NCBI GenBank assembly: GCA_047495785.1
Contig: JBLDXI010000015.1
Span: forward strand, 496,001-560,000
Source: Lepidodermella squamata
Lineage: Eukaryota > Animalia > Gastrotricha
Reading direction: 5' to 3'
DNA length: 64,000 nucleotides
Part shown: in pieces, positions 14,608 to 64,000 of the stretch
Numbering within the stretch: the stretch's first letter is position 1
Layout: every line of letters begins with the position of its first letter
Notes under the pieces: model-generated
The model's database searches: none
Told to the model about the DNA's origin: nothing
What the model saw: the letters and a program-made list of their open reading frames with translations, nothing else
Translations under genes and position numbers: made by a program

Positions 14608-14825
14608 GCGTGAGCAAGCCATTAGAAGGCGTCAGGGGCTAATATTATCCATATAGGGTACCAATCCACCTTGAAATCTGGTACCAAGACTGTTACCTGC
14701 TGACTTTAAGACATGAAAGTCGAAACTTCCAAGTCTCAGAAGTAGCTGAAACCAGATATCAAGTTTGATTGGTACCCTATATGGATAATATTAGCCCATA
14801 ACGCCTTCTAATGGCTTGCTCACGC
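14608..14825. repeat. Inverted repeat (~58-bp arms), probable MITE ends
   Basis: GCGTGAGCAAGCCATTAGAAGGCG..ATATAGGGTACCAATC (14608-14665) recurs inverted at ~14767-14825. Confidence 0.6.
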
Positions 14826-14964
14826 AGAATTGACAAGACATTTTCAGCATAATTAGAGTAATTTAGACATTCGAGAAAGAGTCATCTTAGCACAAATTTT
14901 AGCACAACAGCACAACATCAAATGTTAGACTTAACTTGTCATAATTTAGTTCACATATTATGAC

Positions 14965-15234
14965 GACGGTTCGAATCCTCATAAATTAGCATTTTTTTTG
15001 CTCCGCATTTGATTTTTCATATTTTTTTGTTAATTTTCCATTTAAATTATTCCATACTAACACCACGTATGCCAGACATTTTTTTTTCGGGAGACGTTTA
15101 TAAGTTGCTCAGCAATAAAACTCTCAGAAAAAACAAAGAAACTAATTAAAAATTATTAAAATGGATAATCCATTTTAATTTACAAGTGCAGGGGGGAGTT
15201 TTTTTCCCGCGCCCATTTTGCCCCAATTTACAGT
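14965..15234. mobile_element. 3' part of a MITE family also present at 43359-44057
   Basis: About 210 bp near-identical to 43856-44057; ends CATTTTGCCCCAATTTACAGTA, the inverse of TACCGTCATTTGGGGCAAAATG at 43357. Confidence 0.65.
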
Positions 15235-16354: not shown

Positions 16355-18528
16355 TGTGGTGTATGCGCAACAGGACAGAAGGGAAAACTCTCTAGTTTAT
16401 TGCAAGTGACCAGAATCAGAAAGTATCGCATGTACAAATATCACTTAAACCGCGTATTTATAGTCCATCGAAAGATCTAGATTAGAATCTTCCGGAATGT
16501 TGGCCTAGTGCCAGTTTGGCCGGATGCCAAAATCGGTACATTCTCGACACCTTTCCCTCCAAGAAGACATCCATCCTGCAGTTCGACTCCAGGTCTTGTA
16601 ACGACCAACATCGCCCGTTGCCTTACAAACCTCCATAGCCAACGTGCAGCTTGGTTCTTCTGAAATCGCGTCGAACCAATATCGAGCGATTCGCTTGACG
16701 AATGACTCGATTCCAAATCGCCAACTCGTCAAGAATTCACACATACCAGCACCTAGCCATGCCGTGGTAGCTTCATCATTGCCTTGATCAGACTTCAACA
16801 ACGTTCCCAGTGAACGAATCGAACTCGCTTCAACTCGCTGTGAATCTGCACCAAGCGCCTCCTCGCCTTGACCAGAGAACACCAGCGCCCCTGTTGAACG
16901 GATCGAAACCGCTTCCACCCGTTGTGAATCTGCATCAAGCTCCCTGCTAGAAGCATCCACCACTAACCTAGCATCTGCATCGGTCGCTGTAAGCACATTC
17001 CTGGATTCCCTGGACTTGATCGCCGTGACATAACTTCCGTTCCCGCTCGCCCCTGAGCCGAAAGTTCTTACCTGTCTGCAGATCCAATCCCAGTCCAAAT
17101 CCAGCTTGGGAAGCCAATTCCTTCCAACCAAGTTCTCACCTCGACCTGGCACCAGGACAGCGGTTAACAACGACGAAGACATCGAACCTGGGACTCGCAC
17201 GTCAAACGTGGACACGCCCATCGCCTTCCCGTTGCCGAAGATCGTCGTCACATCTACCTTGACATTCGCCTAGTCGAATTCCCGGTTACCGAACTCCTTG
17301 AAGTACGTTGCCTGCGACAGAACCGTAACCTCAGCTCCTGAGTCGTATAGAAATTTCACCGGCTTGCCATCCAACAGCAATGTCAAGTAGATCGGTGGCG
17401 AACCTTCCAGCCAATCCGCTTCGCCTTTAGCCAAGGTCGCGTAGATCTTGAAGTTTTCGCACGACTCGCTCGACTCCCTCGATTCACTCGATGAGCTCGA
17501 CGATCGCCACTTGACTTCCACTGCATGCGCCGCTTTCGCTGATGATCTCTTGCCCTTCTTCTTGTTCGCCTTGTCGTCTCCATCCCGTGACTCCGCCTCC
17601 GAGTCGTTCGGACAGTCCCTGGCCCAATGCCCGACTTCCTTGCACTTCCGGCAGGCCTTGCACTGCTTGGTCGAATGATCTTCACCACCGCAGTTGTCAC
17701 ACAGACGGCTACACTTGCTCGCCTTCTTCCTCCAACCGACTCCATGGACTTCCACGCCATCGCTTACACCGCCCCTGAAGACTTGAGCCGCCTTCTGAGC
17801 CAACTCCAACCTTGTTGCGAGTTCGACTGCCTGCTTGAAGGTCAACTCCTTCTCGGCCATCATGCGTTCCTGGATATACGCGTCGTCGTAACCTGCGACG
17901 AAACAATCCCGCAATCGCGCCTCATCAGGGTCCTTGGCGTCGTCCTTGAAGTTGCAGTTCTTCGCTGTCGCTTGCAGAGCCGCGCCAAACTCGACTGCCG
18001 TCTGTCCAGGCTGTCTTCTGAGTCTGTGAAGCCGTACGCGCTCTGACAATTGTGTCGGTTTCGGATCATAGAAATCCCGAAGCGCCTTGATGCAGTCGGC
18101 CAGCTTGACATCGCCACTCTTGACGTCCTTGCTTCCCAGCAAGTCGATAAGCTTCCGAAAAACATCGACCGACAACGACACGATGAACGCTGCTTTCTTG
18201 TCCTCCTCCTTCGCCAGCTGCTGGTGAGTACAATAGAACTCGAACCGCGTTTCGAAATCGGAGAATTTTTCTCGGCTTGGATCGAACCTTTCGAGCTTCA
18301 TTGCGTCGACCGCTTTGACTGCGTCGCCAATAATGGGGTGTATGCGCAACAGGACAGAAGGGAAAACTCTCTAGTTTATTGCAAGTGACCAGAATCAGAA
18401 AGTATCGCATGTACAAATATCACTTAAATCGCGTATTTATAGTCCATCGAAAGATCTAGATTAGAATCTTCCGGAATGTTGGCCTAGTGCCAGTTTGGCC
18501 GGATGCCAAAATCGGTACATTCTCGACA
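16355..18528 (-). mobile_element. Non-autonomous Ty3/Gypsy-like LTR retroelement, 2174 bp, Gag + protease only
   Basis: 195-bp LTRs at 16355-16549 and 18334-18528 (TG..CA, two mismatches seen); 5-bp TSD GGAAA at 16350-16354 and 18529-18533; PBS-like TGGCGAC just inside the 5' LTR; PPT GGAGGGAAAGG abutting the 3' LTR. Confidence 0.95.
16505..18349 (-). CDS. gag: Gag (two CCHC knuckles) plus aspartic protease, interrupted by one in-frame TAG
   Basis: CDNCGGEDHSTKQC, CRKCKEVGHWARDC, FLYDSGA; after TAG (17270-17272) the same frame continues to NLVGRNWL. No RT, RNase H or integrase motifs seen. Confidence 0.85.
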
Positions 18529-29003: not shown

Positions 29004-29957
29004 TCAGATGACATGAAACACATGAAATGCAGCAGCAAAGGCTAGAACTGAGACAGATCCACTATAGCTCCCAGCTGTGTTTTTCGGTGTAGCCTTCGAA
29101 TTAATCCAGTCCAAATACTCGGACACTCTCGTATAGACATCAGGCCTGTTTGCTTTGCCGCATGGTCGGGGTCCGAAGGAATCTGCTCCGACCACAACCA
29201 TTCGCTCATCGATCTCAACGACCATCGGCCCGCCAGAATCGCCGGCGCAAGCTCCCTTCCCCCCAGTTGACAACCCACCGGCGCAAATCATTCCTTGCCT
29301 TATGGTCACGCCTGAACTTGCCATAAGAGCAGCACAGTCCGAATTTGTGAGAACTGGCAGGCTAACTTGCTGAAGGAGAGCTGGGGTCGGGCCGTTCGTG
29401 TAGGTACTCCCCCAACCAGTGATCACCGCAGTCTCATCGACCAGACTGCCGATTGATGGCCACGGCAAACAAGCTGGTTGGACGTAGTCGTTGAAGGTGA
29501 TTTTCGACGAAAGCTTCATCACAGCAATATCGTTGTCGAATTCCGTTGGCGACTCATAACGTTCGTGAACGAATATATCACTGGCGAGGTATTCACCCTG
29601 CCCTGGCTCGATCACGCTCAGGTCCTGCTTGCCAACTATTACCTTCCAGTATTTAGGATTGCTCATTGAGCTGGAATCGGCGAAGCAGTGAGCTGCACTC
29701 AGGATCAAATCATCGCTGATGATTGTCCCGCCACACGTGTGACAATCCTGCATAGTGCTGCATTGTTGGTTGGGATTCTTGTATTGCAGCGAGACCTGCC
29801 ACGGATACGCGTTAGCCTTGGCCGTAGAACCTCCGACGATGTATGACACTTCTTTAGAAGAATTGTAGTTGCCGTATTTGTTCAAGCCACAAGAACCTTG
29901 TGGAATAGCTCGGACTGAGCTAGCGATGAGAAAAATTGCGAAAAATACTGGAGACAT
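29004..29957 (-). CDS. S1A serine protease paralogue 2, intronless, GPI-like tail, 317 aa
   Basis: MSPVFFAIFLIASSVRA signal, Y-IVGG, SAAHC, NDIAVM, GDSGGP, hydrophobic C-terminus. Confidence 0.93.
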   Translation of the reverse strand: MSPVFFAIFLIASSVRAIPQGSCGLNKYGNYNSSKEVSYIVGGSTAKANAYPWQVSLQYKNPNQQCSTMQDCHTCGGTIISDDLILSAAHCFADSSSMSNPKYWKVIVGKQDLSVIEPGQGEYLASDIFVHERYESPTEFDNDIAVMKLSSKITFNDYVQPACLPWPSIGSLVDETAVITGWGSTYTNGPTPALLQQVSLPVLTNSDCAALMASSGVTIRQGMICAGGLSTGGKGACAGDSGGPMVVEIDERMVVVGADSFGPRPCGKANRPDVYTRVSEYLDWINSKATPKNTAGSYSGSVSVLAFAAAFHVFHVI

Positions 29958-30240
29958 TATGTGAATACTTGAAATTGATCTTCGGTCGCCATCGTTTTTA
30001 TACATCTTGCTATCTTAAGTCCATTCATTAAGCACATCCGGATGAATAGGCCTTATCTAAGTGTGAGAGCTGCCGTCAGCGATATCAAAATGACCTGCTA
30101 TTTGTAAAACTGATAAAGCATTTCTGAATGCCGGCAATACTCATTTTAGTTGCCATTTCGCCAATTCGTGGTATTTTTCCTCGGGCCTACAACTCGCCTG
30201 AATTTTTTAAGCTACAGCAAATTGTTGTGTGATAAGCGGA

Positions 30241-32115: not shown

Positions 32116-33072
32116 TCAGAATAACAGAAATGCAGCAGCAACAACTAGAACCGAAACAGTAGCGCCAAAGCTCTCAGCCGAGTTTTTCGGGATGGGTATA
32201 CGACCTCCGCTTTTTTCATTGATCCAGTTGAGGTACCTGGAGACTCGCGTGTAGACATCAGGGGCGTTCGCATTGCCACATGGTCTAGGTCCAAAGGAAT
32301 CAGCGCCAACTAAAACCATTCGCTTGTTCATCTCAATGACCATCGGCCCGCCAGAATCGCCAGCGCAAGCTCCTTCCCCGCCAGTTGGCAGCCCACCAAG
32401 GCAAATCATCCCATCCGTTATGGTCACGCCTGAGTAAATTCCACTGCAATCAGAATTTTTCATTGTCGTCAGGCTGACTTGCTGAAGAAGGCCTGGGGTC
32501 GGACCGTTTGTGTAAGTACTCCCCCAGCCAGTGATAGTCGCAGTTTCTTTCGCCAGACTACCGATCGATTGCCACGGCAAACAAGCGGGTTGGACGTAGT
32601 CATTGAAGGTGATCTTTGAAGATAGCTTCATCAAAGCTATGTCGTTGGCGTATTGCGTTGGCACAGCGTAACTGCCGTGAACGACGATATTGCTTGCAAA
32701 GTAGAAATCCTGCTCCGGCTCATTAGTATTCAGGTCTTGCTTTCCGACGATTACCTGCCAGTTTCTTGGATCTCTCATCGCGGAGGAGCTAGCGAAGCAG
32801 TGAGCTGCGCTCAGGATGTACTCATCGCTGATGATCGTCCCACCGCACGTGTGGCATTGCTGCATGGTTTTGCATCCTTGGTTAGTGTACTGTAGTGAGA
32901 CCTGCCATGGGTATGCATTAGCTTTGGCCGTTGTCCCACCAACTATGTATGGGCCGATTGAAGTATTGAAGCTGTTTTTAAAAGTGCCATATTTATTCAC
33001 ACCACAGGAACCTGACGGGATAGCTCCGACTGAACCAGTGATGAGACAAATTGCGAAAATTACCCAAAACAT
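32116..33072 (-). CDS. S1A serine protease paralogue 3, intronless, GPI-like tail, 318 aa
   Basis: Signal peptide, Y-IVGG, intact H/D/S triad, tail NSAESFGATVSVLVVAAAFLLF. Confidence 0.94.
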   Translation of the reverse strand: MFWVIFAICLITGSVGAIPSGSCGVNKYGTFKNSFNTSIGPYIVGGTTAKANAYPWQVSLQYTNQGCKTMQQCHTCGGTIISDEYILSAAHCFASSSAMRDPRNWQVIVGKQDLNTNEPEQDFYFASNIVVHGSYAVPTQYANDIALMKLSSKITFNDYVQPACLPWQSIGSLAKETATITGWGSTYTNGPTPGLLQQVSLTTMKNSDCSGIYSGVTITDGMICLGGLPTGGEGACAGDSGGPMVIEMNKRMVLVGADSFGPRPCGNANAPDVYTRVSRYLNWINEKSGGRIPIPKNSAESFGATVSVLVVAAAFLLF

Positions 33073-40529: not shown

Positions 40530-42714
40530 CCGTGCTGTTGTTACGTGAGTATCCACTGTTCTGAACCCACAAGCCCTAATATTGTGTTTTTTAAGAGCTT
40601 GCCGTGTTCGAATCGTTGGTTAGTTGTCAAGGTATGCAAACCTGATGATTTCCTGTAATATTTCTAATGTCTCATATTTATCTTAAGATAAAGCTTTCGT
40701 ACCAGAGAAGGGTACTGATCTCACCCACGCCGAGGCATCGGAAGCTTGCAAGAAGGCAGGTGCAAAGCTGATCACGCCTAAAGATCAATCGGATTTCAAA
40801 GCGCTCAGGTCCATCATGGCGGACAAGAAACTGACCACGAGTCCTGTTTGGATTGGCAGCAACCCACCGGCTTACCTCTGGGGAAACTACAAGCCAGTTG
40901 ACGACTCCCTATGGAACACGAGGAAGGAAGCTGGCGATGGGGATTGTAAGCGGCTTAGATATACTTCCGATATCATGCATATTTTGTGTCTTGCCCAGGT
41001 GTTGAGCTCTACACGGATATCGCATACGACGCTAAATCGTATAGTGGAGCCGGTCTGGTGACTGCTGACTGCACTAAAAATTACAAATACATCATGTGCC
41101 AGGACACAAAATCGGTACAGTTGGAGGCAAAATGATTTAATTTTGAAAGACAAATCGTTCTGTTTCAGTTCATCATGCAAGCCTTCGAGTTTAACGGCGA
41201 TCAAATGGATGCGAGAAAATTCTGCGAGCAAGAAGGAATGAAATTACCCATCCTGACGGATCGCAGTCAGTTTGAAGCCGCCAATGGCATTCTGCAAGAA
41301 GCTGTTAATAAATTGTCCACTGAAAAGTTTGTTCCTGTTTGGGCATTCAGGCTAATTGGCGCGGAATTTGACCCTGCTGCCAAAGGAATTTCTCCAGCTC
41401 GTAAGTTCTCAAGCTATTCTATTTAGAAAATAACTATAACTGTTCCGTTTAGATGTTCAATACAACTATGAAACAAATGCTGCTACACCTAAACCGGCTA
41501 CCGAGAAGGGAACAGCTATCTGTGAACGATTTACCGGTAAGGATGACTATTGAATTGCTTGTTCATCATATCAGTTTTCATATCTCGCATTTGGGTTATC
41601 GTCGAAAATTTCTGCGACTTAACTAGTATTTATCAAGTTTATGTTTTCCAGCCACGTGCACACCGACTTGCGAGAACGGGGGATCCTGTATCGGTACCAA
41701 CGTTTGCTCCTGCCCAGATGGCTTTGCCGGTCCCACCTGCAAAATTCGTGAGCAACCATTTCGCTGTGGCAGTTTATTTTACTTATCAAAGTTTTCGTGC
41801 AGCCAAGTATTTCAAGGTGAAAATGGCAGCTGATCACAAAACCCCATTTGGCGTATGCGAAGCTGCCGGTGGAGTTATGGCTTCAATTCGCACGCCAGGT
41901 GAAGCTGAGAAAGCTAAAGCCGTTGCTGGCAAGGACCCCGTTTACATTGGCTTGGGGGCGGTTTATTCATACACTGGTTCCCAAGAAAGCCCTATCACAA
42001 AGCGAATCCCAATGCGACCTGGTCCGATTGGGTGGAAAGAAAATGAGCCTAGTAGTACTGGCGGTGGCATACGTAAGGCATTCAGATTCCAGATAATCAT
42101 CAGTTAAATATATAATTATCAGGAGTTCGAATCGACTACGGGGGCTTTTCTCTCTTTCCTGAAGTCAATGGAATCAATGGTGGAATGCTATGCGCAAACG
42201 CAGACGTAAGCTTGTTAGTTAACGCTTAAATGGGGTCTAAAATATTTCATTGTGCTTGTAGAACGGGAAAAGCCTCAGTATCTACCCATCATCTAGCTAT
42301 GGTCAGACAAAGTATGAAATGATGAAGAAAGTGTGTGCTGCTTATGGTCAGTTCCCTGTGGGGCTCGACAAACTCACAGATTATTACCTCAAGCTTGAGA
42401 GTAGCTTAAAGAATAATCCCGGCATTAATTACACAGTGAGTGCTATTCGCACTGACAATCGCCTATTCAGCCATGTCACTGGTGAGAGAATTGAGAATTT
42501 CCCTATTCCGTGGGCTAAAGATGCTGACCGCTATTACGAGTTTTACCAGGGAAATGCCTGTAAGTTATTTGATCGAACACTGCACTGCACTTTTTTTAAC
42601 TCGATTATCTTTTCAGGCGTTGTCTTGCGACCGGATGGATTCATTCAAGACGCTTCTTGCGACTACTGGCCTGGCGAAAGGTCTACACTATGCAGCGTTA
42701 AGCCTGAATTGTGA
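40530..42714 (+). CDS. Divergent C-type-lectin-like/EGF protein, paralogue A; start codon apparently lost (possible pseudogene)
   Basis: Exon series homologous to paralogue B from 48944 on (EACKKAG.., WIGS, ICQDTK, one EGF exon, TLCSVKPEL). The ATG/signal-start region is replaced by unrelated sequence with in-frame stops. Confidence 0.7.
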
Positions 42715-43358
42715 ACGGCTATTTGCTCTAATGATGGTGAGAGCTGAGAGTATAGAGCATTGAATGACAAAATAAATCAGGCTGAATGACAAAATGAATG
42801 ACAAAATAAATGAGCCAGCCGTTAAAGTGTAACCTTTTAAATGGCTTCAAGCTTCAACTCTTTAGGATCGACGATTTAAAGAATGAGAGGAACAATGTCA
42901 GGAGCTTGAGGAAGGGTCGTAGCGAGGCAATGTATTCTGAGTCTGCTTTCTATTGTTTGATCAATAACTGGTTTCGAAGGGTCTTTTCGAATGCAAATAT
43001 TACATTCTGTTTTCCATCCGCCGTATGAATCAAGTTTGCGGCAATTCGGACAGATTAACAGGCGAAGGTTCTCGATGCTGAAAGTTGCTTCATCGGCGAG
43101 GCCACGTCGGCGATAAGCGATAATCATATCTTTAGTCGTGATCCCTAAACTGATTGCTTTTAGTTTGCTGATGATTGTGAGAACACCGATATGCTCATCG
43201 ACCCTTCAAACTCGCCAAACTCGCCCCGGTGAATCTGAACGGGTTGAAATTTGACTTGAGTATGGCTATCATTTACAGCATTCTACCATTATCACTCATC
43301 TGCCAGTACAGGGCTCTTTGAATACCCCCTCCCAACGTTGTTTTGTTTGCAATAGTAC

Positions 43359-44161
43359 CGTCATTTGGGGCAAAATGAACCTTTGGGGCTAATTGGCCAA
43401 AAATTAAGGTTTTTACCATTTTATCGATAGCTCAAAAACTACAGGGTAAAACTTTACAAAAATTTACGGGGACGATTATCAACAAGCCTCCTGCAAATTT
43501 TCAGCCACGTATGTCCCGAAATGAGGTCACAGCATGTTGTTGCACAGAGGTGAGTTTAGGGAGGTAAAAATGGCCCCTCTAAATTGAATTACCTGGAGCC
43601 AATCACGAGGTTTGATGTTCAGATGAATTTGTTTCCTTCGACCGTCGTAGATGACAGCAAAAAAAACCGCGACCCCAGGCGATGCACAGGTATGGCTAGG
43701 TGATTGTGGCCAAATTGCCACATGGGAAACTCAATGATGGGGGCTAATTGGCCACCATTATCCTTATAATGGGTTTTTAATATTTAGTGATTGTGAGGGT
43801 TGAATGGTCGAGTGGTTGTGATGCGTCCATCAGAACTTGAGTGATCTGATGAGCGACGGTTCGAATCCTCATAAAGTGGCATTTTTTTGCTCCGCATTTG
43901 ATTTTTTTAATTTTGTTGTTAATTTTCCATTTTAATTATTCCACTAACACCACGTATGCCGGACATTTTTTTGTTCGGGAGACGTTTAAAAGTCGCTCAG
44001 CAATAAAACTCTCAGAAAAAACGGAGAAACAAATTAAAAATTATTAAAATGGACAATTAAAACAAACAAAAATTAAAAAAATCAAATGCGGAGCAAAAAA
44101 ATGCCACTTTATGAGGATTCGAACCGTCGCTCATCAGATCACTCAAGTTCTGATGGACGCA
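43359..44161. mobile_element. MITE 5' part with tRNA-like segment and inverted partial duplication
   Basis: TA|CCGTCATTTGGGGCAAAATG end; A-box-like TGGTCGAGTGG (43805) and B-box GGTTCGAATCC (43858); ~43821-43908 recurs inverted at ~44075-44161. Confidence 0.6.
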
Positions 44162-44899
44162 TTTCGATTCTATTGACAGGATATCGGTTTAAGCTTGATC
44201 AAATCTGTCGAAATGATATGAATATGATGCAGAATGGAGTGAAACAGTGGATTTCCGGTGTTGCATAGTCTTATGCATTGAATGCACTCTTTGATATGAA
44301 CGATTAACAGCATGCAGCATTATTCACTATTCTTTAATTATGAAGCATCAATAATCCACATCAGCTTCGTATCATTTATCGCATCGCAGAGAGCGAAGTA
44401 GGACAGCAGAACTGGTTGGGATAAGGAAAATTAGCTTAGGGGTCCCCGTTTGGTCTTTGACGAAGCGGACCGATTGAACTGGTAGGAATGATCCCTGCCA
44501 TCCCGAGCTGTACTTGGCTCTCTGGCGAATCGGAATTGTTATGTTTTTTTTTATTTTGCTATTATTTGAGATTGCGGATAAGACGGGAATTTATCTCGTT
44601 GCCTGATGAGTAACAGCCTGAATGTGATTGATTGAAAATAACCCGATCTCTTCTGTTCATTTCGAATCATCTAAAATGTTTTGCAATTCACATACATAGC
44701 TGAATTCCATGCTGCTGAGCTTATCCATGTACGCTGCATATTTTCAAGGTCCCAATTTACAGCAATGATGGGCTAGCACTGATGAGTAGGCTATTAACTA
44801 CGTCACCAGTATGAGCTTTGAGCTTTGCTCAGATGAGTGCATTATGATCAACTTTCATATAATTCATCTACTCCTAGCCGTAGCTTTCTGCCGGTAGAA

Positions 44900-44975
44900 T
44901 GACGTCAGTCAAGCAGTTGTTCAGCTGTCGACAAATTATTCGTGTTTGACGTCATCGAAAAAGCCGTTTATTTAA
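44900..44975 (+). promoter_or_regulatory. Promoter of lectin paralogue B: two CRE palindromes plus TATA-like box
   Basis: TGACGTCA at 44900 and 44947; TATTTAA at 44969; ATG at 45060. Confidence 0.55.
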
Positions 44976-45059
44976 TATCGCGATCGCCCGAATTTCTCAC
45001 TAATTTTCGCTATTAATTCTACTGAGTTTCATTTCGTTGTTTTATCCATTCGAGGCTAA

Positions 45060-48000
45060 ATGCTAGTCAAAGCTCTGGCCGCGCTGTTGTTACGTAAGTT
45101 TATACTGCTCGGTTTCCCAATGCCCAAATGTCTTGTATTTTTCTCAAGAGCTTGCATTGTTCGAACTTCTCACTGATGGTCACCTCTTGAAGCCTCATGA
45201 GGAGTATCATCATCCTCGTCATCATCATCATCATCACCATGATAAATGGGATAACGCTATCGATCGCAAGCATTCGCGCATCAGATATTACGATGCTGAC
45301 TACTCCAACGCGACCACTGTACTGCCGAAAAAGGTGAAACCTTCAAAGAAGCCCTCGAAGACTAAGAAGCCTAACGTTGGAGGTCATACAAAACCGAAAA
45401 ATGGAACCACGGAGAAACAAAAGCCGGTTACTAACACTCTGCCAAAAGGCGGAAACAAACCGAAGCCGGTAGCTCCTGCACCCTCGAAGAAACCGAATAC
45501 GGCTACCCCTGCGGCGAAAGGCGGAGACAAACTGAAGCCGGTAGCTCCTGCACCCTCGAAGAAACCGAATACGGCTACCCCTGCGGCGAAAGGCGGAGAC
45601 AAACCGAAGCCGGTAGCTCCTGCACCCTCGAAGAAACCGAATACGGCTACCCCTGCGGCGAAAGGCGGAGACAAACCGAAGCCGGTAGCTCCTGCACCCT
45701 CGAAGAAACCGAATACGGCTACCCCTGCGGCGAAAGGCGGAGACAAACCGAAGCCGGTAGCTCCTGCACCCTCGAAGAAACCGAATACGGCTACCCCTGC
45801 GGCGAAAGGCGGAGACAAACCGAAGCCGGTAGCTCCTGCACCCTCGAAGAAACCGAATACGGCTACCCCTGCGGCGAAAGGCGGAGACAAACCGAAGCCG
45901 GTAGCTCCTGCACCCTCGAAGAAACCGAATACGGCTACCCCTGCGGCGAAAGGCGGAGACAAACTGAAGCCGGTAGCTCCTGCACCCTCGAAGAAACTGA
46001 ATACGACTACCCCTGCGACGAAACCGAATACGGCAAATACTACTCAGCCGGACAGTGGGGTGACCGCCAAGCCGGTATTTCCTGCAACGCCAAATGGACG
46101 TAAGTAGCTCAGTTTCACTTTGAATGTCTATAAATCGAACCGTTTATCTGCTTCATTATGCAACCACTTAAACTTCCTTTCAAATTCAATCGATCGCTAC
46201 CAGGACTCTGGCATGAAACATTCAGTCATGCGATACATTTTTTGCAACAATAATTTTAGTAGTCGACCAAGATTTATATGTATTTTACCGCCGTTGCCAT
46301 TGGAAACCATGCAACTGGTGGGGCAAGGTCATTTTAGTGTTTATTCATATAGTATAATTGCACGATCAAAATATTTCATGCTGGAGTCAGGGTAACGATC
46401 GATTGACCAATCAGCGTGCGCGGTAACGTTCAAACATTAGTGGTTCCTCAAAGATATTCTAAATTAAGCCTTCAAGTACGAGATTCGTTTCGCACAAAAA
46501 CATTTCCTTTCTGGTCCGAAATTGCTAATCAAATTGCTAACAAACGCTCATTTGACTGTTTTCCATTCACAGCGGTATGCAAAACACCTTGCGCGAACGG
46601 TGGAACCTGCTCTGCTGGCAACACGTGCAAGTGCGCCACTGGCTGGACTGGATCTACCTGCGAGAAGTGTAAGATCCTATTCTCATAACATCACTAGTCC
46701 TGCATTATATTGTGATATTTCAGCTGAGTGCTCGAAACCATGTGAAAATGGCGGGACTTGCAACGGACCAGATAGCTGCAAATGCAATGATTTGTATTCT
46801 GGACCCACCTGTTCTCAAGGTAAACATAGAAGATCTGATCTGAATCTAATAACACTCCCAGTGAGATTAAAGTGATCTGGCATCATGGCAGAGATTGCGC
46901 ATTTTTCGCACCATTGAGTGCAAAAAAAGAGTCCGCAGGTGCAGAGGATTTTTTACATCTCATCTGAGATTTTGAAACATCCGAAATTGCGGCTTTTTTA
47001 AATCAAACGCTCATTTGACTGTTTTCCATTCACAGTGGTATGCAAAACACCTTGCACGAACGGTGGAACTTGCGCCGCTGGCAACGCTGGCAACACTTGC
47101 AAGTGCACGGCTGGCTGGACTGGACCTACCTGCGAGAAGTGTAAGATGATATTTCCATAAAATAAAAAAATTGTATTGATTGTCATACATACAATGACTT
47201 TCGCCTTTTACTTTTCCCATTCCAATTTTATCGTTCATATATTCACATGATATTAATTTTTCAGCTGAGTGCTCGAAACCATGTGAAAATGGCGGGACTT
47301 GCAACGGACCAGATAGCTGCAAATGCAACGATTTGTTCTCTGGACCCACCTGTTCTCAAGGTAAACATAGAAGATCTGATCTGAATCTAATTACACTCCC
47401 ATGGAGATTTAAAGAGCATTTCTCCGTGGCAGAGCGCTAAGTTAGGTGGGGAATGAGGGGTGTCTTACCTCATAGTTTGGCATGACGAGGTGGAAAACAC
47501 AAGAAAGAGCACAGGGGGCCCCTCTGGTCATAAAATGTGAGCCCATTAAAAAACCTTAGTTCGAGGATCCTAATTGGCGCACTGTTTTCATGGCTCACCA
47601 GGACCTTTCCTGTATTTTGAGAACAAGCAAGGTCAGCAAGTTCAGAAGATATCTAGAATCCCGCATCCCGCCATATAGAAATTAATGATTCGAAGTAATT
47701 CATTTACATAGAGTCAATCGACTCCATAGAGTCAGTTTTTCTCTATGAAACCCGACTCAGGTTTTCAGACACGCTTACATTGCGTGACTACTTAGAAGTC
47801 CGATCCAATGCGCACGCTGATTGGTCAATCGATCGTTGCTATGACGCCCGGATGAAACATGTTGGTTGTGCGATCCATGCAACTTGTTGCAACAAGTGTT
47901 TTTTGCCGCAGTAGTTTGACACGATTATTATGGGGTTTACGCTCGTGGTCAATGGACACCGTGTAGAGGGCGTGGCAAGGTCATTTTTACATAAATATAA

Positions 48001-50922
48001 CATAATTTATTAGTGGATCTCACGAAGGAAATGTTTCATCCCGGAGTCATGGCAACGATCAATTGACCAATCAAGTTTTTCAAATCAAGTTGTTCATGTG
48101 TTTGTTTTGCATTTGTAGCGGTATGCAAAACACCTTGCGCGAACGGTGGAACATGTGCCGCTGGAAACGCTGGCAACACGTGCAAGTGCGCTGCTGGTTG
48201 GACTGGACCTACCTGCGAAAAGTGTAAGATCTTTTCCAACATAATTAGTCCTGCATTATAATGTGCCATTTTTAGCTGCGTGTTCGAAACCATGCGAAAA
48301 TGGCGGGACGTGCAACGGACCAGATAGCTGCAAATGCAATGATTTGTTTTCTGGATCCACTTGTTCTCAAGGTATATTGTCCATCCGAAATAACTGATCA
48401 GACAGTTGTAACCATTCCATGGAGATATAAGTAATCTGGTGTCGCCGCTTAGAATCAGAGTCGCTTAGTCGCCGCTTAAAAATGTACCTTTCTTGCACCA
48501 TTCACCATTGTCTTTGAAACACTCCGCAGGTGCAAAAGATTACTTAAATCCCCCTGCAGATTGTCAAATATCAGAAATTGCGGCTTTTTGAAATCAAATT
48601 GCATACAACCGCTCATTTGATTGTTGTGCATTTACAGCGGTTTGCAAAACGCCATGCGCGAACGGTGGAACTTGCGCCGCTGGCAACGCTGGCAACGCGT
48701 GCAAGTGCGCTGCTGGCTGGACTGGACCTACCTGCGAGAAGTGTAAGATCTTTTCCAACATAATTGGCCCTGCATTATATTGTGCTATTTCTAGCTGAGT
48801 GTTCGAAATTATGCGAAAATGGCGGCACATGCGAAGGACCTGATAGCTGCAAATGCAATTCATTTTTCTCCGGGCCGACCTGTTCTCTAGGTACTTTATC
48901 CCGATTTTATTATTTGTTGAGTCTAATACACTTGTTATTTCAGAAAAATTATTCCTGCCAGAGCAGGGTCTCGATGTCAATTTCGAAGAGGCTTCGCAAC
49001 TTTGCAAGAAGGCCAACGCAAGGCTGTTCACGCCTAAAGATGAGTCGCAAATCGCTGATTTCCGGTCTTATCTAAAGGGGACTAAACTACCTTCACGTCC
49101 AATTTGGATCCGTGTGGCATCGTCGGCTTACGCTTGGGGCAACAACAAGCCCGTTGACAACTCGCTGTGGCACATGAAAAAAGAGGCTGGCGATGCTGAA
49201 TGTAAGTTGTTCGGTCTTAACAGAACAGTTGAAAAAAGTAGTGTTGAAATTTCCCTGATGAAGGCGTTGAACTCTTCACTGACATGCCTCGCAGTGGTAA
49301 ATCGATAAAAGGAGCAGGCCTGGTGACTGTTGACTGTGCTAAAACTTACAAAGCTATTATTTGCCAGGACACAAAATCGGTATAGTTTTAATCATTTCCG
49401 CCGTTTTCTCACGCAAATTTGCCATTGTTTCAGTTTCTCATGCAAGCATTCGAGTTTAACGGCGATCGAGCAGGTGCGATCAAATTGTGCGAGCGAGAGG
49501 GAATGCGACTGCCCATCCTCAGTGATCCCGGTCAGTTCGAAGCAGCTAATGGCATTCTCCAGCAGGCGCTTTCTGCGTTCGCCGATCAGAGGTTTGTTCC
49601 TGTCTGGGCGAGCAGGTTGTCTGGGGCAAATCTTGATCCTGCTAGCAAGGGAATTTCTCCAGGCCGTTAGTCTTCCCAAAATTAAAGATTATTATTACTG
49701 GGTACTGCATTCAGATGTTCAATACACCTACAAATCGAATACAATGTCGCCTAAGCCGGCTACTGACAGGGGATCGGCGGTTTGCGAACGATTCACAGGT
49801 GAGTTATCTGTGCAACATTACACTGGACTTGAACTTAGAAATGTTAAGCCACATGCATGCCCGCTTGCGAGAATGGCGGAACATGCACTGATACGAACGT
49901 CTGTGCCTGCGCTGATGGTTTTGTTGGACCAACCTGCAGCAAATGTGAGCTATTAATTTGGTGTTTGATGAATTTACTATCTGTTTATTCGTGCAGCCAA
50001 ATACTTCAAGGTGCCGACCGTTGGCCCCGCGCCATATGGACCATATAGTCCATATGGCGCTTGCGAAGCTGCCGGCGGTGTTTTGGCTTCCATTCGCACG
50101 CCAGGTGAAGCCGAGCAAGCGAAAGCTGTTGCTGGCAATCCGTTCTATGGAGTCTACATCGGCTTGGGTGCTGATTTTATATTCTCTGGAGCCGGTATCC
50201 CTAGTATTGATAAGCGAATCCCCATGCGACCGGGTCCCATTGGATGGAAAACAAGCAGCAATACAGCAATTCAGGGGCACTGTAAGGCCCTAGTTTTAAC
50301 AAAAAATAATTGAATCAAAATCATTTTATCAGGTTTACGAATTGAGAAAGAAGGGTATTCCCCTGCTCCTTGCAATGGTATGGGCCAGTATGGTCTATGC
50401 GGCAATTATAAGGCAATATTTCTGAATCCCTGTATCGCTAAAAAAAATCTTTTTTTTTGTATTTTCATGTACCCTTAGACGGGAGAATTCTCCCATATCG
50501 TATACAACAATCAAGATGGACAGTATTCAACGTTTATTGACTTGTGCAGACAAAGCAATCGTGATTTGACTCCTTGGTCGGTCGACAAGCTCGCTGATTT
50601 CGCAAAGGTTGAGAAAATGTTTACATCAACTATGACAGCCTTCGCCGTAGGGGGTATGCGCAATAGCCAGTATGAGTTTAGACATGCCACTGGAGAGAAA
50701 ATGGAAGATTTCCCTATCCCATGGGCCAAAAGCGCCCAGTATTTATGGCAAAATGGATGTAAGTTATTCGATTCTGATTCGACTCTCAGTTCCATGAAAT
50801 ATGATTCTTTCATGTTAGGCGTTCTCCTGCGGTCTGATGGATTCATTGAAGACTCATTGTGCTACCGGACTGGTGTAGAGGAGAATAGACCGGCAGCCCT
50901 ATGCAGCGTGAAGCCTGAATGA
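45060..50922 (+). CDS. Secreted mosaic protein, paralogue B: SP, His tract, Lys/Pro/Ala repeat, 8 EGF, divergent CTL-like domains with one more EGF (~19 exons)
   Basis: Exons 45060-45093 and 45149-46099; eight phase-1 EGF exons (46573-46668, 46724-46819, 47036-47140, 47265-47360, 48119-48223, 48276-48371, 48638-48742, 48795-48890); then 48944 onward to the stop at 50922. Confidence 0.85.
45445..46020 (+). repeat. Coding minisatellite, 8 x 72 bp (KGGDKPKPVAPAPSKKPNTATPAA)
   Basis: Units start at 45445, 45517 ... 45949; internal units are essentially identical. Confidence 0.97.
46200..46422. repeat. Intronic copy of the Tc1-associated palindromic unit
   Basis: Shares GGCAAGGTCATTTT and ACGATCGATTGACCAATCAGCGTGCGC with 51404-51677; core is in the opposite orientation. 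Confidence 0.65.
47776..48072. repeat. Intronic copy of the Tc1-associated palindromic unit
   Basis: Reverse complement of ~51410-51710. Confidence 0.75.
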
Positions 50923-57430: not shown

Positions 57431-57891
57431 ACTTGGGTTTTTAGAACTCGCAGGCCTTAGTAGCATTTCCTTTCGTTGGAGAAACATTCATGTTCCGGAG
57501 TTTCGAAGGCAGTGGGGCGAACTTTACCTCCTCGATCGGATATGAGTGAAGCTTTTATGCAGATTGATGGCACCCTCGAGCGATTTTAAAATTTTGCCTT
57601 TGTGACTTTCAGCAACGGTGGTTCCCTAACGGTGAAGAATTAGCCATGAAATTTAGTGAGCTTACTCATTTATGTTCGGAATGTTGATGGTTGGAAGTTG
57701 AAAGGTGAGCCCGGGGCCCGGGCAACCTCATGATTAGGGAGCAGCAAGTGTTCGAAAGTAGTCGACAGTTTTTATTAATATTTAGGTAACCTTACCTTAT
57801 ATTGAATAAAATGTTATACTAGTTATTTGTCTACTAATTTTATTGCAATACAAATAAATGGAATTGCGGGACCATAACAGCAATGCAACAA

Positions 57892-60800
57892 TCATTTGAA
57901 ATATGGCAAGCCCATGTAACTCTCGATGCCGCACCTATTTACACCCTTTCGGATCTTGAAGTAGCCCTTAATGCCCCAAGAATCGCCCCACGAATTTCGC
58001 CCGATCCAATAGTCCAACTTCGACGTAGGATCTGTGCCGTATCCAAGAATAACAATGGCATGATTAGTGGAAGTCGCACAGTTAGGTGGATCGAGAATGC
58101 CGTCTTTGTAAACATCAAATTGCGCTTCTGCGTTGATGGTGCCGTAGATCGGACCATACTTCAGAGCATCCATCATTTTTTGTACCATCTGCTCCTGAGG
58201 AAGCTCATCATAATTAGTAAGTGATGTAGCTCCTTTCAGCCTCAGGTATCCATTAACTGTCATGGCAACACCAGTAGTAAAAGTACACGATCCCTTGTCG
58301 CTCATAGTATATTTGTAGTCATCGGCTTTGGCGAAAGCTTTCACTTTGGTGAAATATTTGAAAGTCGAAACATCGGTCCCGCCATCGCAGCCACTGTTAC
58401 CGCCACTCCCTTTAGAACAATCGACGATCTGTTGCTCGGACATAGATATCGGAGAAGCTGTGTTTTTGATAGCCCAGCGAGCTTCGAGGACAGCAGATGT
58501 AGCGAATGAATAGCACGATCCGCATTGCTGTTGGTTCTTTATTGGGGCCATGTAACCTGCAATAAGTAACACACATTATCGACTTCAAAGTGACGCCAAA
58601 AGTGCGCCAAACCCTAAAATCTAGCAGCTCGATACTTAGGCTCAAATTTGTCTACGGAAATTTGTCTTCGATGGCTACCGGATCAGAAGTAGGAGTAGGG
58701 CAGTCCTAATTTTTGTCACGTATAACTCTTAATCTAGGCGCACGTTAGAAACCTTAGGTTTAGAAGACCCTTGATTATAGGCCTAGGAAGGCAGAGAAAA
58801 CCCAGGCCTAGAGACAAGGAACCTATAACTAGCCCAGGCGTACAGAATTTTGACTGGGCGATGTTTAGGTAAGTGATGAAAGTAAGCTAAATTGAGCCGG
58901 TGCTGTATAATTCGATCGTTGTCGAGTGTTTTTTCGTGGGGGTTTGAGACGATATAAAAACATCAGAAAAAGTTATCCTGAAAAACCGGCTCAATTAAGC
59001 CTTCTTTCATCACTTACCTAAACATCGCACAGTCAAAAGTCTGTAGACGCCTAGAGCCTTTTCTAGACCTAGGGCCTAACTTAATCAAACCCTCACAACG
59101 TATTACGGCGCTTAATACGGCATGTCGATGTATTTTTTCGCAACAACGAAATTTCGTTGTATTTCAGATACAACGAAACTGGCGAGAGGTAAGGGTTTTT
59201 TGTCGCCGAGGAAGAATGAAGACAATCTTGTAGCGAGTTGGTTGTTAAATAAAAAGCGCGAGAGCGCGCGGTCATTAGATAATTATTGTAACTAATCTGA
59301 AGCAATTGGTTGCAATAATAGCGGTATCAATAGCGCGCCCGATAACACATTTTATGCCGATAACACATTATCGGTATCAATAATTTAGGAAGCTTTAGAC
59401 AATTTTTGAAAAATTCGGAAAATTTTAAGGATGTTCAGAAAAAATACAGGTACACAGAAACGGATCGAAATGAGAAATGAGAAACTTATGATTTTATCGA
59501 TCAATTTCAAGCTCTTCTTGTGCGGCCTTGCGCCTTAAAATCGTGACTTGTAGTAGTTGTAGTCATTCTATCGTGCGCGCGAGAAAGAGCAGGACTAGCG
59601 CTGTGAGCGGCGGACAGCCGGCCAGTTTGGTTACGAATGGGGGAATACTGCTTCTGTTTCTAGCCTAAAAGCGCGCTTTAAGATTTTATTTTGGCGAAAT
59701 TGAGGCTGATATAAGCTGCGACGCCCTGCCGCCCTTCGAGGAATGATTCCTCCCTCCAAGGTAGCGCCGCTTACTGTCGCTTGCCAAGTCCTGCCACGGT
59801 GTGCTGTTGACTGCTGCATTTCGGCATGGTTTCTTGCGCGTAATAGGAATGGCGAATTTCAGTTACGACTACAGTGTCAAATAGCGATAATTCTTTTCGA
59901 ATTGATTTCTATTGACGCAAATTCATATCGACATGACGTATCAAACGCGGTAATACGTTATTAATTGCTTATTCAGATTGTGGTTTCTGGCTTTGAAATG
60001 AATGCTTTTGCTTGTTAAGAGAGTCAATTTCCACGATATCGCAAATATCGCTCCATTCTTCACTTTGTGCGTATATGCGTATTGCTGGCCTCATAAAAAT
60101 AATAGCAACAGCAACGTGAATATGGTGAATATTCGCAACATTCAAGCACAGCAAGAAAAACAACACAAACAAGGAAGTACTGGGCATATAATTCTGAAAC
60201 GCACTGTATTATTATCATCGGAAAGAAGAAGGAAACCATTTCCCAATCTTCCATTTCCCATTCAGCTGGAAAGCTGGAAAGAGGATGGAGTATTCTCAGC
60301 TTACCCTTTGTTCGCCAATCGATGACAGCTCCAGCCATCGGCACAGCATCATCTGCTGATACAGTCTGCGTAGGCGCATTACTGAACTCCGTGAGTGACG
60401 TCGGGAAGGATTTTAATGACCGTGTTGTATACAGATCACGCTGCATAGACGTTGTATCATAGTTATTTCCAGCCACATCCATGCATCGCTTGCGATCGGC
60501 TCCGACGTCCCTTCCATCTTCTTGCTCAACAACGCAAACTGTACATTTCGAGCCTACGCAAACCAGGGGCGGTTCAAAAAAGACAATCTCTCGCCTGCGT
60601 CTTCGGCGACCGCTAGCAACGTCTGTCGTAGTCGCAGGCTTCAAGCCGAGCAAGTTCTTCTTGCGCCAGGCGTCAGTTTTCGCACTGTATTGGTTGATGC
60701 CGAACTTGACGTTTTTATTCGCTGGATCTGCTGTCAGCTGGTCGATTTCATCCAAATCTTTCAACAACTCAGTCTCGCCTTCTTCATCTTCATCCTCAGT

Positions 60801-62369
60801 GTCAATCTCGTCGTCTTTATACAACTTTTTAAAGGCTGCCCAGCGAGGATCGTCGTAAGCTGGCTGTTGAGCTAAATGGAGCGAGAAATCTAGGTTTTTG
60901 GATCACAGCTGAAAAAACTCACGCTGGGCTAAAATTAAGAAAGACGCAATTTTGTTCAGTTCAAGTAATTTTTTCAAGCTTACCGCAATTAGAGCCGGAG
61001 TAGGCAGCTGTGCATTTGCAAGTGTTTTTACCAATGCAAGTTCCGCCGTTTTGACAGTAATCCGTTGAACATCCAACTGAAATAAAACCGATAATATGAT
61101 AAGGTATGATACTCGAACTTCAAAGATCTCAAAAAAGTAAATATTGACCACAAAGTGAAATCCTAAAACGTAACAGAAAGACGATCATCCCGAGGTACCG
61201 GGATATCGTCTGCCAGAATTTCCCATGTTGAATTACATGCATTCCAACCCAAATCTGACGTCAAATTCTATTTATTCCAGTAATGTCTTTTTGTCACTGA
61301 GGCTTATCACGAAACTGTGATGGCTATAAAGATTATGAACAACCTTAGTAAAAAGAGAGGATGTATGTGAAAGATTCAAAGTTCAAATTCTGAAATTGTG
61401 CAATTTGTTTATGCAATTTTATGCAATTTTATTGCAAACCGCAAGCATATCCAAACAACACCGAACAAAAATTCATATCAAAAAATTCAAAACATAAACA
61501 TGCATTTTGTTTCAAGTAGTAAGCTAAGTGTTGATCCGCGCGCTGATTGGTCAATCTATTGTTGCTATGACCCCGGGATGAAACATTTCTGTCGTGCGAT
61601 CCACTAATAAATTATTTTATATTCATGTAAAAAATGACCTTGCCACGCCTTCTGCACGGTGTCCATTGACCACGAGCGTAAACACCATAATAATCGTAGC
61701 AATCTGCTGCGGCAAAAACACTTGTTGCAAAAAGTTGCATGGATCCACGACCATAATGTTTCATCCGGAACGATCGATTAACCAATCAGCGCGCGCCCAG
61801 AAATACTACTAGTTATCTCAAGCACAATGTCAAAGATAGATGCCTGTCTGGGATTTTAAATTAGTGTGGAATGGCAGAATCGAGAAAAAAAGAATAGGGC
61901 CACATTATTCCATTGTATAAGGGTTATACATTATCCTTACTCCATGTAACGTGTAACGTCCTCAACTTACATGTACTGCAATCTGTCCCATACCAACCAG
62001 CAGCGCAGTCGCAAATGTTTGGCCCAGCACAAGTGCCACCATTCTTGCAGGTAACCGTTGTGCAGAGAGCTATGGCAATGGCACGGACTTTGAACATGCC
62101 ACCATGAATGCAGCAGAGACGTTGACTTACAAATGTCGCAATTTGCACCACTCCAGGCGCTTGAACAGCTGCAAATGTTTGCGCCGACACAAGTTTGCCG
62201 GCTGTTACAATTCGAGCAAGTATCTAACCATTTTAGAAAAGAAGGGTCAATTAATAATGACAAATATTCGTCTCTTACATTTATTGCAAGTTGTTCCCGA
62301 GTAGCCACTAGGGCAGATGCAAGTACCAGAACTGTAGGTTCCGCCGTTAAGGCAGACGATAGACTGGGC
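57892..62369 (-). CDS. Cathepsin-L-like (C1A) cysteine protease with at least 4 N-terminal EGF domains; 5' end unresolved
   Basis: Exons 62369-62279, 62223-62131, 62069-61971, 61076-60984 (EGF), 60871-60305 (I29-like prodomain WAAFKKLY..FGINQYS..IDWRTK), 58556-57892 (NQQQCGSCYSF, NHAI, RNSWG); all joins are phase 1 and in frame. Confidence 0.85.
58843..59043. mobile_element. 201-bp Tc1/mariner-type MITE in the cathepsin intron
   Basis: TA|CAGAATTTTGACTG..GTTTAGGTAAGTGATGAAAG and inverse ending CTG|TA. Confidence 0.8.
61538..61796. repeat. Intronic copy of the Tc1-associated palindromic unit
   Basis: Colinear with 51404-51677 (GCGCTGATTGGTCAAT..AAAAATGACCTTGCCAC..ACCAATCAGCGCGCGC). Confidence 0.8.
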
Positions 62370-63799
62370 CTTTAAATCGTCCCGTATAAATTATAAATGC
62401 AGAACTATTAGATTGCAATTAATTCGACCTATCTATGTATGGTCGCTATCGAATTAATGGTATAGCTACCCAAGCTGGTCTCGACCTTTTTATCTTGAGC
62501 ATAATTTGTTTTTCTTCTTGTCGAATAGCTCAATTTCCACGTCTATTAAGTAGAGATCTATGCAATAAAGGTAACTTGGATACCCCGCAAACACTTTTGT
62601 CAAATACTCTTTCCTAATTTGGAAATGTATGCTTCGCAAAGAACAAAATTGGACTGCTTCTTTTGAAAGCAACGCCACCCGATGAAGGCCATTACGCATT
62701 ATAGTTGACATTACATTGGGTGAATTGTTAAATACGTACCGCTGGGTTTCTGACCTGTTGATTCGAGGTGCAGGCGTGGATCAGACCAGCTGTAACCAGA
62801 ACTGATCATCGGTAGAATAAATTTTAGAAATTGTATAAAGACGTCTCAAAACATTTACCGAGAAGTAAAGGTAGGATTACAAGCATATTAGCTATAAATT
62901 TTGCAGAAATGCAGTTTGATGTGAACCGCGAAATTACTCTCGCGATTGTGAATGGTTAGCCGTTGAAGTTTTCGCACTCAAATGCAAATGCCATTGTTTA
63001 GCCGCCCACGGCCAGAAAGCATTTGCGCCCGCGAACTTGAGCCATTTAATAGAGGAATACCGCGTTCTAAGTATTATTAGGTGTGAATATCAGTGCCAAA
63101 TAAGAGACCTAGGACCTAGGAGTTTCGTTGGGGTTTTAAAACTGTATTAAGAAATACTGGGTCATTTGAACGTGCCGCATTGAAAAGGCCTTTGCCGTTT
63201 TTTTGCGTCACACAATTGGGAGAGGGGCGTGAGCTCATATCAATCTACTAAACAATTACTCGAATTAAGAAGAATTACCTAGCTTTTGCACACTTTTACT
63301 AATCGGTTCGCAGTTTCCACTGCAAGCAAACTACAAAAGGAACTAGGTGAAAAAACGACGACGGGTCAAAAATAATCGCGTTTATGGCAGAATTTAGAAA
63401 TTTTCTGGAAGGAAAAATCAAGAACCAAGTTTTTTCAGATGGACCAAGGCGTATTTAATATGCAAGTTTATCTCAGGAACTATCAGGCGGCGGAGAAGAT
63501 AAATAGGCATTGGGCATTGGAATGACCATAAGAATGACTGGCTACTTTTCTACGGATAAACTGCCGCATGTAATTTTAAATAAAAAATGCACCAATCGAG
63601 AAGCTAATCCACAATCCACACACTCTGTGGCATAATGAGAGTCACGTAAACTGTAGTTTACATTTATTGCAGCCAGATCTGGAGTTCGATTGAACTTGAC
63701 GCTATTATAACGTTATTCTGTTTGTCTGGATTCATTTCAAATTCAATTTCATGTACATCATCTCCGCGTTCCCTGCCGGCCTCATTCATCCACGCTGCT

Positions 63800-64000
63800 T
63801 TACTGTATATCTACTAATTTTCGGTGACCATTAATTTTCGTGTGTGGCCGACCACATGTTAGGCATCGTTCGTCTCCGGAGCAATTCCGCGCCATATGGC
63901 CGTATCGCTGGCATCGGAAGCATTGCATCACATCTGGAGGTTTCACAACAAACCCTCGGAATCGCAGCAGAAATGGTTTCGCAGTCAGGCCGTTCTTTAC
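63800..64000 (-). mobile_element. LINE ORF1 (Gag-like zinc knuckle) fragment running off the window edge
   Basis: Manual translation VMQCFRCQRYGHMARNCSGDERCLTCGRPH, typical of I/Jockey/R1-type ORF1; not in the ORF track. Confidence 0.8.

Follow-up and report, generated by a model that had tools for sequence, protein, structure and literature searches.

A probable four-EGF, cathepsin-L-like zymogen gene in the gastrotrich Lepidodermella squamata

Introduction

Papain-family cathepsins are textbook simple lysosomal zymogens, self-activating in acid. A locus of the gastrotrich Lepidodermella squamata raises the question of whether such an enzyme can be built into a multidomain protein bearing epidermal growth factor (EGF) repeats, and, if so, how it would be held latent and released. 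The locus lies in a stretch of 64,000 nucleotides (nt) of contig JBLDXI010000015.1 (assembly GCA_047495785.1, positions 496,001 to 560,000, forward strand), hereafter called the window, whose own numbering is used throughout. An earlier reading of this window (the original prediction) had proposed that four EGF exons are spliced onto a papain-family zymogen with a rebuilt prodomain, that the product might be a furin-activated extracellular protease, and that its architecture was not known to that reading as a described family.

Here we show that the EGF and protease exons can be read as one gene, and we consider it probable that this gene is intact, specific to its lineage and codes for a secreted, multidomain papain-family zymogen of 565 residues, which would be activated by a proprotein convertase. 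In the model, the domains follow one another in the order signal peptide, four EGF repeats, degenerate Inhibitor_I29 (I29) propeptide, RRRRRR motif, a module with four cysteines (the 4-Cys module) together with a linker, and a cathepsin-L-like catalytic domain.

Structure of the EGF-Cathepsin Gene

The spliced model consists of eight exons on the minus strand, between positions 62886 and 57892, and forms a single open frame of 565 codons (571 if the acceptor at 60889, discussed below, is used). All the introns are canonical (GT..AG) and their phases match; moreover, the 565 codons contain neither stops nor frameshifts, and no catalytic residue has been lost.

The first two exons supply the start of the protein. 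Exon 1 (62859-62886), read from the sequence, carries the ATG and the first nine signal-peptide codons (MLVILPLLL) and ends in phase 1 at a GTAAAT donor, while exon 2 (62740-62801) completes the signal peptide with VLVTAGLIHA, adds a short linker with a cysteine, Cys20, and joins EGF exon 1 in phase 0. The GT..AG intron that separates them measures 57 nt, like the other short introns of this gene (usually 55-61 nt). The resulting signal peptide, MLVILPLLLVLVTAGLIHA, is of the classical type; its best 10-residue hydrophobic window scores 3.45, as against 1.93 at most for the other ATG-led open reading frames (ORFs) from EGF3 to the pro-exon.

The four EGF exons lie at 62279-62369, 62131-62223, 61971-62069 and 60984-61076; each of them ends in phase 1 at a GTAAG donor, and the last three are of phase 1-1. 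They are followed by an exon of 189 residues, here called the pro-exon (60305-60871, phase 1-1; an open frame of about 190 codons), which comprises the degenerate I29 region, the polybasic site, the 4-Cys module and a Ser/Thr-rich linker, and which ends with IDWRTK. The last exon (57892-58556) covers the whole Peptidase_C1 domain and ends with the stop codon, and an AATAAA poly(A) signal is found about 50 nt past the latter (57839-57844).

According to these data, the four EGF exons can indeed be joined in frame, in phase 1, to a papain-family zymogen whose reading frame is open on the minus strand. As for the extent of the gene, the EGF, pro- and catalytic exons are as originally claimed; the start at 62369 has to be given up, since the two upstream exons add the ATG and the signal peptide.

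Joining of the EGF and Protease Exons

Two acceptors, at 60889 and 60871, allow an in-frame phase-1 join of EGF exon 4 to the pro-exon, the former adding six residues. The acceptor at 60871 is favoured on the basis of a paralogue contig (about 91% identical), which also holds both EGF exon 4 and the start of the following exon. This contig is similar to the gene from 60750 to 60877, reaching into the final six bases of the intron ahead of the 60871 acceptor, and is similar again from 60975, that is, 9 nt into the intron past the EGF4 donor; between 60877 and 60975 it has 104 unrelated letters, versus 97 in the window copy. Since EGF exon 4 is kept about 100 nt upstream of the pro-exon in the paralogue contig, the linkage of these two exons is conserved across gene copies.

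Furthermore, neither an ATG nor a leader is present in the two protease exons (the pro-exon and the catalytic exon) themselves, and the interval from EGF3 to the pro-exon contains no hydrophobic exon that begins with an ATG and is followed by a donor. The matching phases, the need of the protease for an upstream start and leader, the 565 intact codons and the EGF4-intron-pro-exon arrangement kept in the paralogue all argue for a single gene, and we regard it as quite probable, on this sequence evidence, that the EGF and protease exons are fused.

The main rival to this conclusion is an EGF-only product. The EGF exons might mainly give a small secreted EGF protein, either through an out-of-frame acceptor at 60908 or by intron retention, the cathepsin part remaining untranslated or being confined to a minor isoform. 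The acceptor at 60908 (TTTTTTCAG) has the strongest pyrimidine tract of all and lies at the usual spacing from a possible branch site, but it is out of frame, and its use would result in a truncated EGF-only protein; read-through of the EGF4 donor, in turn, meets a stop after seven codons. On the other hand, several proven-looking acceptors of the same gene also lack pyrimidine tracts, and the similarity to the paralogue, which keeps the adjacency of the exons, begins at the 60871 acceptor and not at 60908. In addition, the pro-exon and the catalytic exon together form an open frame of 415 codons in which all the functional residues are kept, which would be unexpected in an untranslated sequence, and no other possible start is available to them. 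An EGF-only protein as the principal product is, in our opinion, unlikely. The acceptor at 60908 was also considered as part of a protease mRNA, and this was ruled out by the in-frame TGA at 60905-60903.

Introns and Repeated Elements

Two introns of the gene harbor repeated sequences. The intron between EGF3 and EGF4 contains a foldback element (61537-61795) resembling a miniature inverted-repeat transposable element, with inverted arms of 27 and 21 nt; its contig depth is about 14,000-15,000, versus about 42 for single-copy sequence in the DNA run, and it is thus a very high-copy repeat. The length of this intron, 894 nt instead of the usual 55-61 nt, is accounted for by this element. The last intron contains a hairpin with 61-nt arms (58841-59045) and, at 59097-59959, an element with inverted repeats of 44 nt at its ends. 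One DNA contig joins 58592 directly to 60293, skipping 1,700 nt of this intron (58593-60292), which points to an allele or a paralogue with a last intron of about 48 nt.

These features bear on a second alternative, according to which the window copy has recently been disabled or silenced, being an unexpressed member of a tandem family whose introns are filling with mobile elements and whose junction has been altered with respect to functional paralogues. The high-copy foldback or terminal-inverted-repeat elements in two introns, the 1.7 kilobases of the last intron missing from one DNA contig and the difference from the paralogue in the segment from EGF4 to the pro-exon would all agree with such a scenario. 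Transposons in introns are, however, harmless in themselves; every splice site is canonical, and the coding sequence runs for 565 codons without stops, frameshifts or lost catalytic residues. A silent copy therefore seems improbable to us, and we retain the reading as an intact gene in what follows.

The Catalytic Region

The catalytic exon matches Pfam PF00112 (Peptidase_C1) with an E value of 1e-55 and 189.7 bits (cut-off 20.7), and a profile of procathepsin L with 241.8 bits. The alignment to procathepsin L confirmed the intact Q/C/H/N set reported originally, placing Q19 at 58531-58533, C25 at 58513-58515, H159 at 58060-58062 and N175 at 57994-57996. Moreover, W177 and the six cysteines of the three papain disulfides are kept, and Trp26 is replaced by Tyr.

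The best matches of this exon in the PDB are dionain-1, cathepsin H and cathepsin L (1e-36 to 1e-33), and the scores are about equal for dionain-1 and cathepsins H, L, V, K, S and C; no cathepsin B is present among the best 60 PDB matches. Among database proteins of 121-385 residues, the highest identity is about 42%, with proteins of the Joint Genome Institute (JGI) collection, insect procathepsin L and rotifer proteins. Within the cathepsin-L-like group, the catalytic domain is best placed as a deep branch specific to its lineage, with no orthologue among the named cathepsins. Lastly, no N-glycosylation sequon occurs in the whole protein, which argues against a mannose-6-phosphate-dependent sorting to lysosomes.

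The Propeptide Region

The profile alignment to procathepsin L propeptides revealed an I29-like remnant at 60633-60851. A comparison, by hhalign, of the pro-exon with the propeptide columns of a profile built on 60 procathepsin L sequences gave a score of 28 (P 1.6e-4), the match being colinear between residues 8-80 of the pro-exon and profile columns 33-102, whereas 30 shuffled sequences did not exceed 13.1. A weak but colinear match to the pro-exon was also obtained by hmmsearch with the profile of the 60 full-length proteins, and the ESM Atlas clusters nearest to the pro-exon carry Inhibitor_I29 (score 0.90). Because the colinear profile matches stand far above the shuffles, and because of the I29 features in the Atlas, we assign the first 75 residues or so of the pro-exon to a degenerate I29 propeptide.

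The motifs within this region follow the description given in the original prediction. The W..FK..Y motif is kept as WAAFKKLY (60842-60819), and the counterpart of GxNxFxD is FGINQYS (60704-60684), in which GINQYS retains the G and the N, not the F or the D. The ERFNIN motif is absent: in both the sequence and the hhalign alignment, the corresponding stretch is acidic (EDEDEEGETELLKDLDEIDQL), and an acidic amphipathic helix, DDEIDTEDEDEEGETE (60768-60815), is predicted to take its place. In the alignment, the helix retains the hydrophobic residues of ERFNIN (L, L, I, L), the polar face being the one that has become acidic.

Two further segments would correspond to parts of procathepsin L beyond its helices. 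By comparison with the human sequence, the segment LLGLKP presumably falls at the cleft-blocking stretch of the propeptide, and the RRRRRR run (60591-60608), which stands in the context GRRRRRR followed by E, presumably on the basic stretch that comes after it. This run fits the R-X-K/R-R consensus of proprotein convertases and separates the prodomain from the mature part in a protein with a signal peptide, as would be expected of a convertase substrate.

The Insert and the EGF Repeats

Between RRRRRR and IDWR (60323-60312) there is an insert with four cysteines, whose length, originally put at about 90 residues, is exactly 89. It comprises the 4-Cys module (60483-60560; C-x5-C-x2-C-x18-C) and a Ser/Thr-rich, Cys-free linker to the mature N-terminus (60324-60467), recognized from its composition and from the model of the entire exon, where its predicted local distance difference test score (pLDDT) stays below 50. 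Structure prediction, which had been suggested for the insert, was carried out with AlphaFold on a single sequence; for the 47 residues coded by 60450-60590 it returned a small beta-sheet of moderate confidence (pLDDT 67.6). A comparison of this model with the PDB (Foldseek) and with the Atlas retrieved generic beta-meander matches only, none of them meaningful, and no relative of the 4-Cys module was found in Pfam, in the exhaustive protein search, in the PDB or in metagenome contigs.

The EGF exons 1, 3 and 4, taken singly, pass the Pfam gathering scores (EGF_2 and/or EGF_Teneurin), and exon 2 remains just below. In particular, exon 1 scores 28.1 bits with EGF_Teneurin (cut-off 24.3) and 23.8 bits with EGF_2 (cut-off 22.1), and exons 2, 3 and 4 score 19.9, 27.3 and 23.0 bits, respectively, with EGF_2. 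The first repeat is atypical, having four cysteines in its exon in addition to Cys20 upstream and missing the C3 position. The other three have six cysteines each, with the spacing C-x2-C-x5-C-x5-C-x-C-x8-C in repeat 2. The whole EGF region thus has an odd number of cysteines (23), Cys20 being the one without a partner. In the model, the repeats are of the compact tenascin/teneurin type.

Relatives in Databases and Literature

No relative of the pro-exon was retrieved by a word search (proteins of 107-340 residues), nor by an exhaustive phmmer search against 1.84 billion representative proteins, and none was present in the PDB or in the JGI metagenome contigs. These blanks mean that a recognisable relative is lacking in the organisms sampled, and they also reflect the poor sampling of the lineage, since the source genome is absent from those collections. 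For the catalytic exon, a scan of metagenomes gave distant loci only and the protein search (121-385 residues) only ordinary cathepsins at no more than 42% identity; among its Atlas neighbours there was no cluster combining EGF with C1. The rotifer proteins of 385 residues, considered as possible long relatives, were rejected, having no EGF repeat, polybasic site or insert.

In the literature searched, we found no description of an EGF-cathepsin-L architecture. The cathepsin of the Laqueus shell (PMC4536745) and the expanded C1 proteases of Saprolegnia (PMC3681718) have ordinary architectures. In this literature, TINAG and TINAGL1, discussed below, are the only proteins that unite EGF with a papain fold.

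A Possible Activation Mechanism

On the reading that we prefer, the enzyme would enter the secretory pathway in a latent form, held inactive by the I29-like helices and by the LLGLKP segment. A convertase of the furin type would then cut after RRRRRR, a step taking the place of the acid-triggered self-activation seen in lysosomal cathepsins. Of the two products, the EGF4-propeptide fragment would measure about 25 kDa, and the other, of about 35 kDa, would carry the catalytic domain preceded by the 4-Cys module and the linker. As this cut would leave the EGF repeats with the propeptide, their role would be on the zymogen and not on the mature enzyme, unless the fragments stay associated. The likeliest role is in targeting or anchoring the zymogen to the matrix or to the cell surface; alternatively, the repeats may promote oligomerisation through the odd Cys20.

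With the signal peptide completing the protein, an extracellular protease, or one of the secretory pathway, becomes the natural reading. The furin-activated extracellular protease originally suggested is therefore supported as far as the architecture and the entry into the secretory pathway are concerned; the cut by furin at RRRRRR is still a reading of the motif.

Besides the out-of-frame acceptor discussed above, several points weigh against this interpretation. The pro-exon matches no Pfam family, even at E values up to 1, and in particular not PF08246 (Inhibitor_I29), and the AlphaFold model of the whole pro-exon is unusable (pLDDT 39). In the sole public run that contains this DNA, the contigs derive from DNA and read straight through the introns, and secretion, activity and the convertase cut are deductions from the sequence. 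Moreover, if RRRRRR is cut, the EGF repeats leave with the propeptide, so that it is doubtful what they could contribute to the active enzyme.

It might also be that the protein is an ordinary lysosomal or digestive cathepsin L, whose extension is simply removed and which matures by autocatalysis at low pH, the polybasic run and the insert having no regulatory role. The catalytic domain does have the standard cathepsin-L-type fold, and the protein still has the I29-like helices and the presumed cleft-blocking segment. The salt bridges of the ERFNIN helix are held to drive the acid-triggered opening of the propeptide; in the protein from the window, this helix is replaced by an acidic one. In addition, the lack of an N-glycosylation sequon makes the mannose-6-phosphate route unavailable, and EGF repeats are extracellular modules. 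We thus judge an ordinary cathepsin to be very unlikely.

A wider interpretation can be proposed for the convertase-activated zymogen, although we consider it rather doubtful. The gene might belong to a lineage-specific family of extracellular cysteine proteases that is expanding in tandem, in which a convertase has replaced acid activation, the EGF-propeptide part acts as a latency and anchoring fragment comparable to the latency-associated peptide, and the 4-Cys module, kept on the mature N-terminus, is a fast-diversifying exosite directing each paralogue to its own target, be it in defence, in feeding or in the remodelling of the matrix, to give examples. In the DNA run, where paralogue contigs of at least 90% identity were counted, the summed contig depth over the propeptide-coding region (60586-60927) and the 3' end of the catalytic exon is about three times that of single-copy sequence; over the 4-Cys module (60415-60585) it hardly exceeds the single-copy level. 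Contig depth is a weak measure, and the contrast is a weak pointer, which would fit paralogues diverging most in the 4-Cys module.

If the preferred reading is true, a secreted cathepsin-L-type enzyme with matrix-type EGF repeats has lost the pH-sensing ERFNIN helix and acquired a convertase motif; cysteine cathepsins would thereby have taken on the modular organization and the control by convertases that are otherwise seen in astacins, ADAMs and clotting proteases. The gene would then offer a natural system for asking how an I29 propeptide is re-engineered and how a small, variable N-terminal module affects specificity. Its value is limited for now, the family seeming restricted to a single, poorly sampled lineage and the expression of the gene being presumed.

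Other Genes of the Window

Three intronless, paralogous genes of the trypsin family are located on the minus strand, at 12896-13933, 29004-30005 and 32116-33072 (Pfam Trypsin, 1e-59 to 1e-62); in each of them, the N-terminus resembles a signal peptide and the C-terminal tail is hydrophobic. On the plus strand, PAN/apple-domain frames followed by a Kringle domain (1626-3457) probably form one secreted multidomain gene. A second gene rich in EGF exons (41550-49308, plus strand; EGF exons at 41660-48889) includes a C-type lectin domain (48853-49308), and its exon at 45133-46107 codes for about eight tandem proline/lysine-rich repeats of 23-24 residues, with a unit like PKPVAPAPSKKPNTATPAAKGGDK.

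Retroelement gag-like frames with CCHC zinc knuckles are found on the minus strand at 16505-18349 and 63800-64000; the frame of the latter, at 63800-63997, sits just upstream of the EGF-cathepsin gene. The plus strand also harbors a riboflavin-transporter ORF (PF06237; 5856-6926), which is 33-35% identical to its best matches, from Xenopus and a pipefish. This ceiling, together with that of about 42% for the cathepsin, shows that the source organism is distant from all that the protein collections contain. The search of the 64-kb window against Rfam gave no match.

Comparison with Known Systems

Close relatives in organization are procathepsin L and the other ERFNIN-type C1A zymogens, which consist of a signal peptide, I29 and Peptidase_C1. 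The protein from the window shares with them Q19, C25, H159 and N175, the three papain disulfides, the position of the propeptide, the W..FK..Y motif, a partly kept GxNxFxD-like motif and a mature N-terminus after DWR. It differs from them in having four EGF repeats before the propeptide, a polybasic site with an 89-residue insert, and an acidic helix where they have ERFNIN; compared with the cathepsins of the databases, it is only about 40% identical and has no N-glycosylation site.

Additional N-terminal domains are not new among C1A proteases. Cathepsin C, with its exclusion domain, and cathepsin F, with a cystatin-like domain, both carry an extra domain before the propeptide; they are lysosomal and are not known to be activated at a polybasic site. 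The protein from the window is, like them, a C1A protease with an N-terminal addition, but in their case the addition is not EGF.

The combination of EGF-like domains with a papain fold also has a precedent in TINAG and TINAGL1, which are secreted, matrix-associated animal proteins (PMC5361709, citing Wex et al. 2001). Their papain-fold domain is described as cathepsin-B-like and proteolytically inactive, and as lacking an I29 propeptide (PMC5361709). The protein from the window is instead cathepsin-L/H-like, has Cys25 and keeps an I29 remnant, and it shares neither of the two features that define the TINAG proteins. The novelty of joining EGF with C1A is nonetheless tempered by these proteins. 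The idea of an architecture outside any described family holds, in this light, for the EGF-cathepsin-L combination, and not for the union of EGF with a papain fold as such; we regard the gene as a probable lineage-specific variation on the EGF/papain-fold combination, of which the cathepsin-L-type version with an intact catalytic centre is undescribed in the literature searched.

Finally, a likeness in design logic is found with proteases of other catalytic classes. ADAMs and coagulation factors VII, IX and X are EGF-bearing extracellular proteases activated by convertases. Astacins such as the meprins and BMP1/tolloid are likewise modular, EGF-bearing and convertase-controlled (PMC9848320). 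All these enzymes share with the putative zymogen a signal peptide, a prodomain freed at a polybasic site and EGF repeats for binding the matrix, the cell surface or a partner. They are, however, metallo- or serine proteases whose EGF repeats are mostly on the catalytic chain, whereas the protein from the window would be a cysteine protease whose EGF repeats, at the putative cut, stay with the propeptide.

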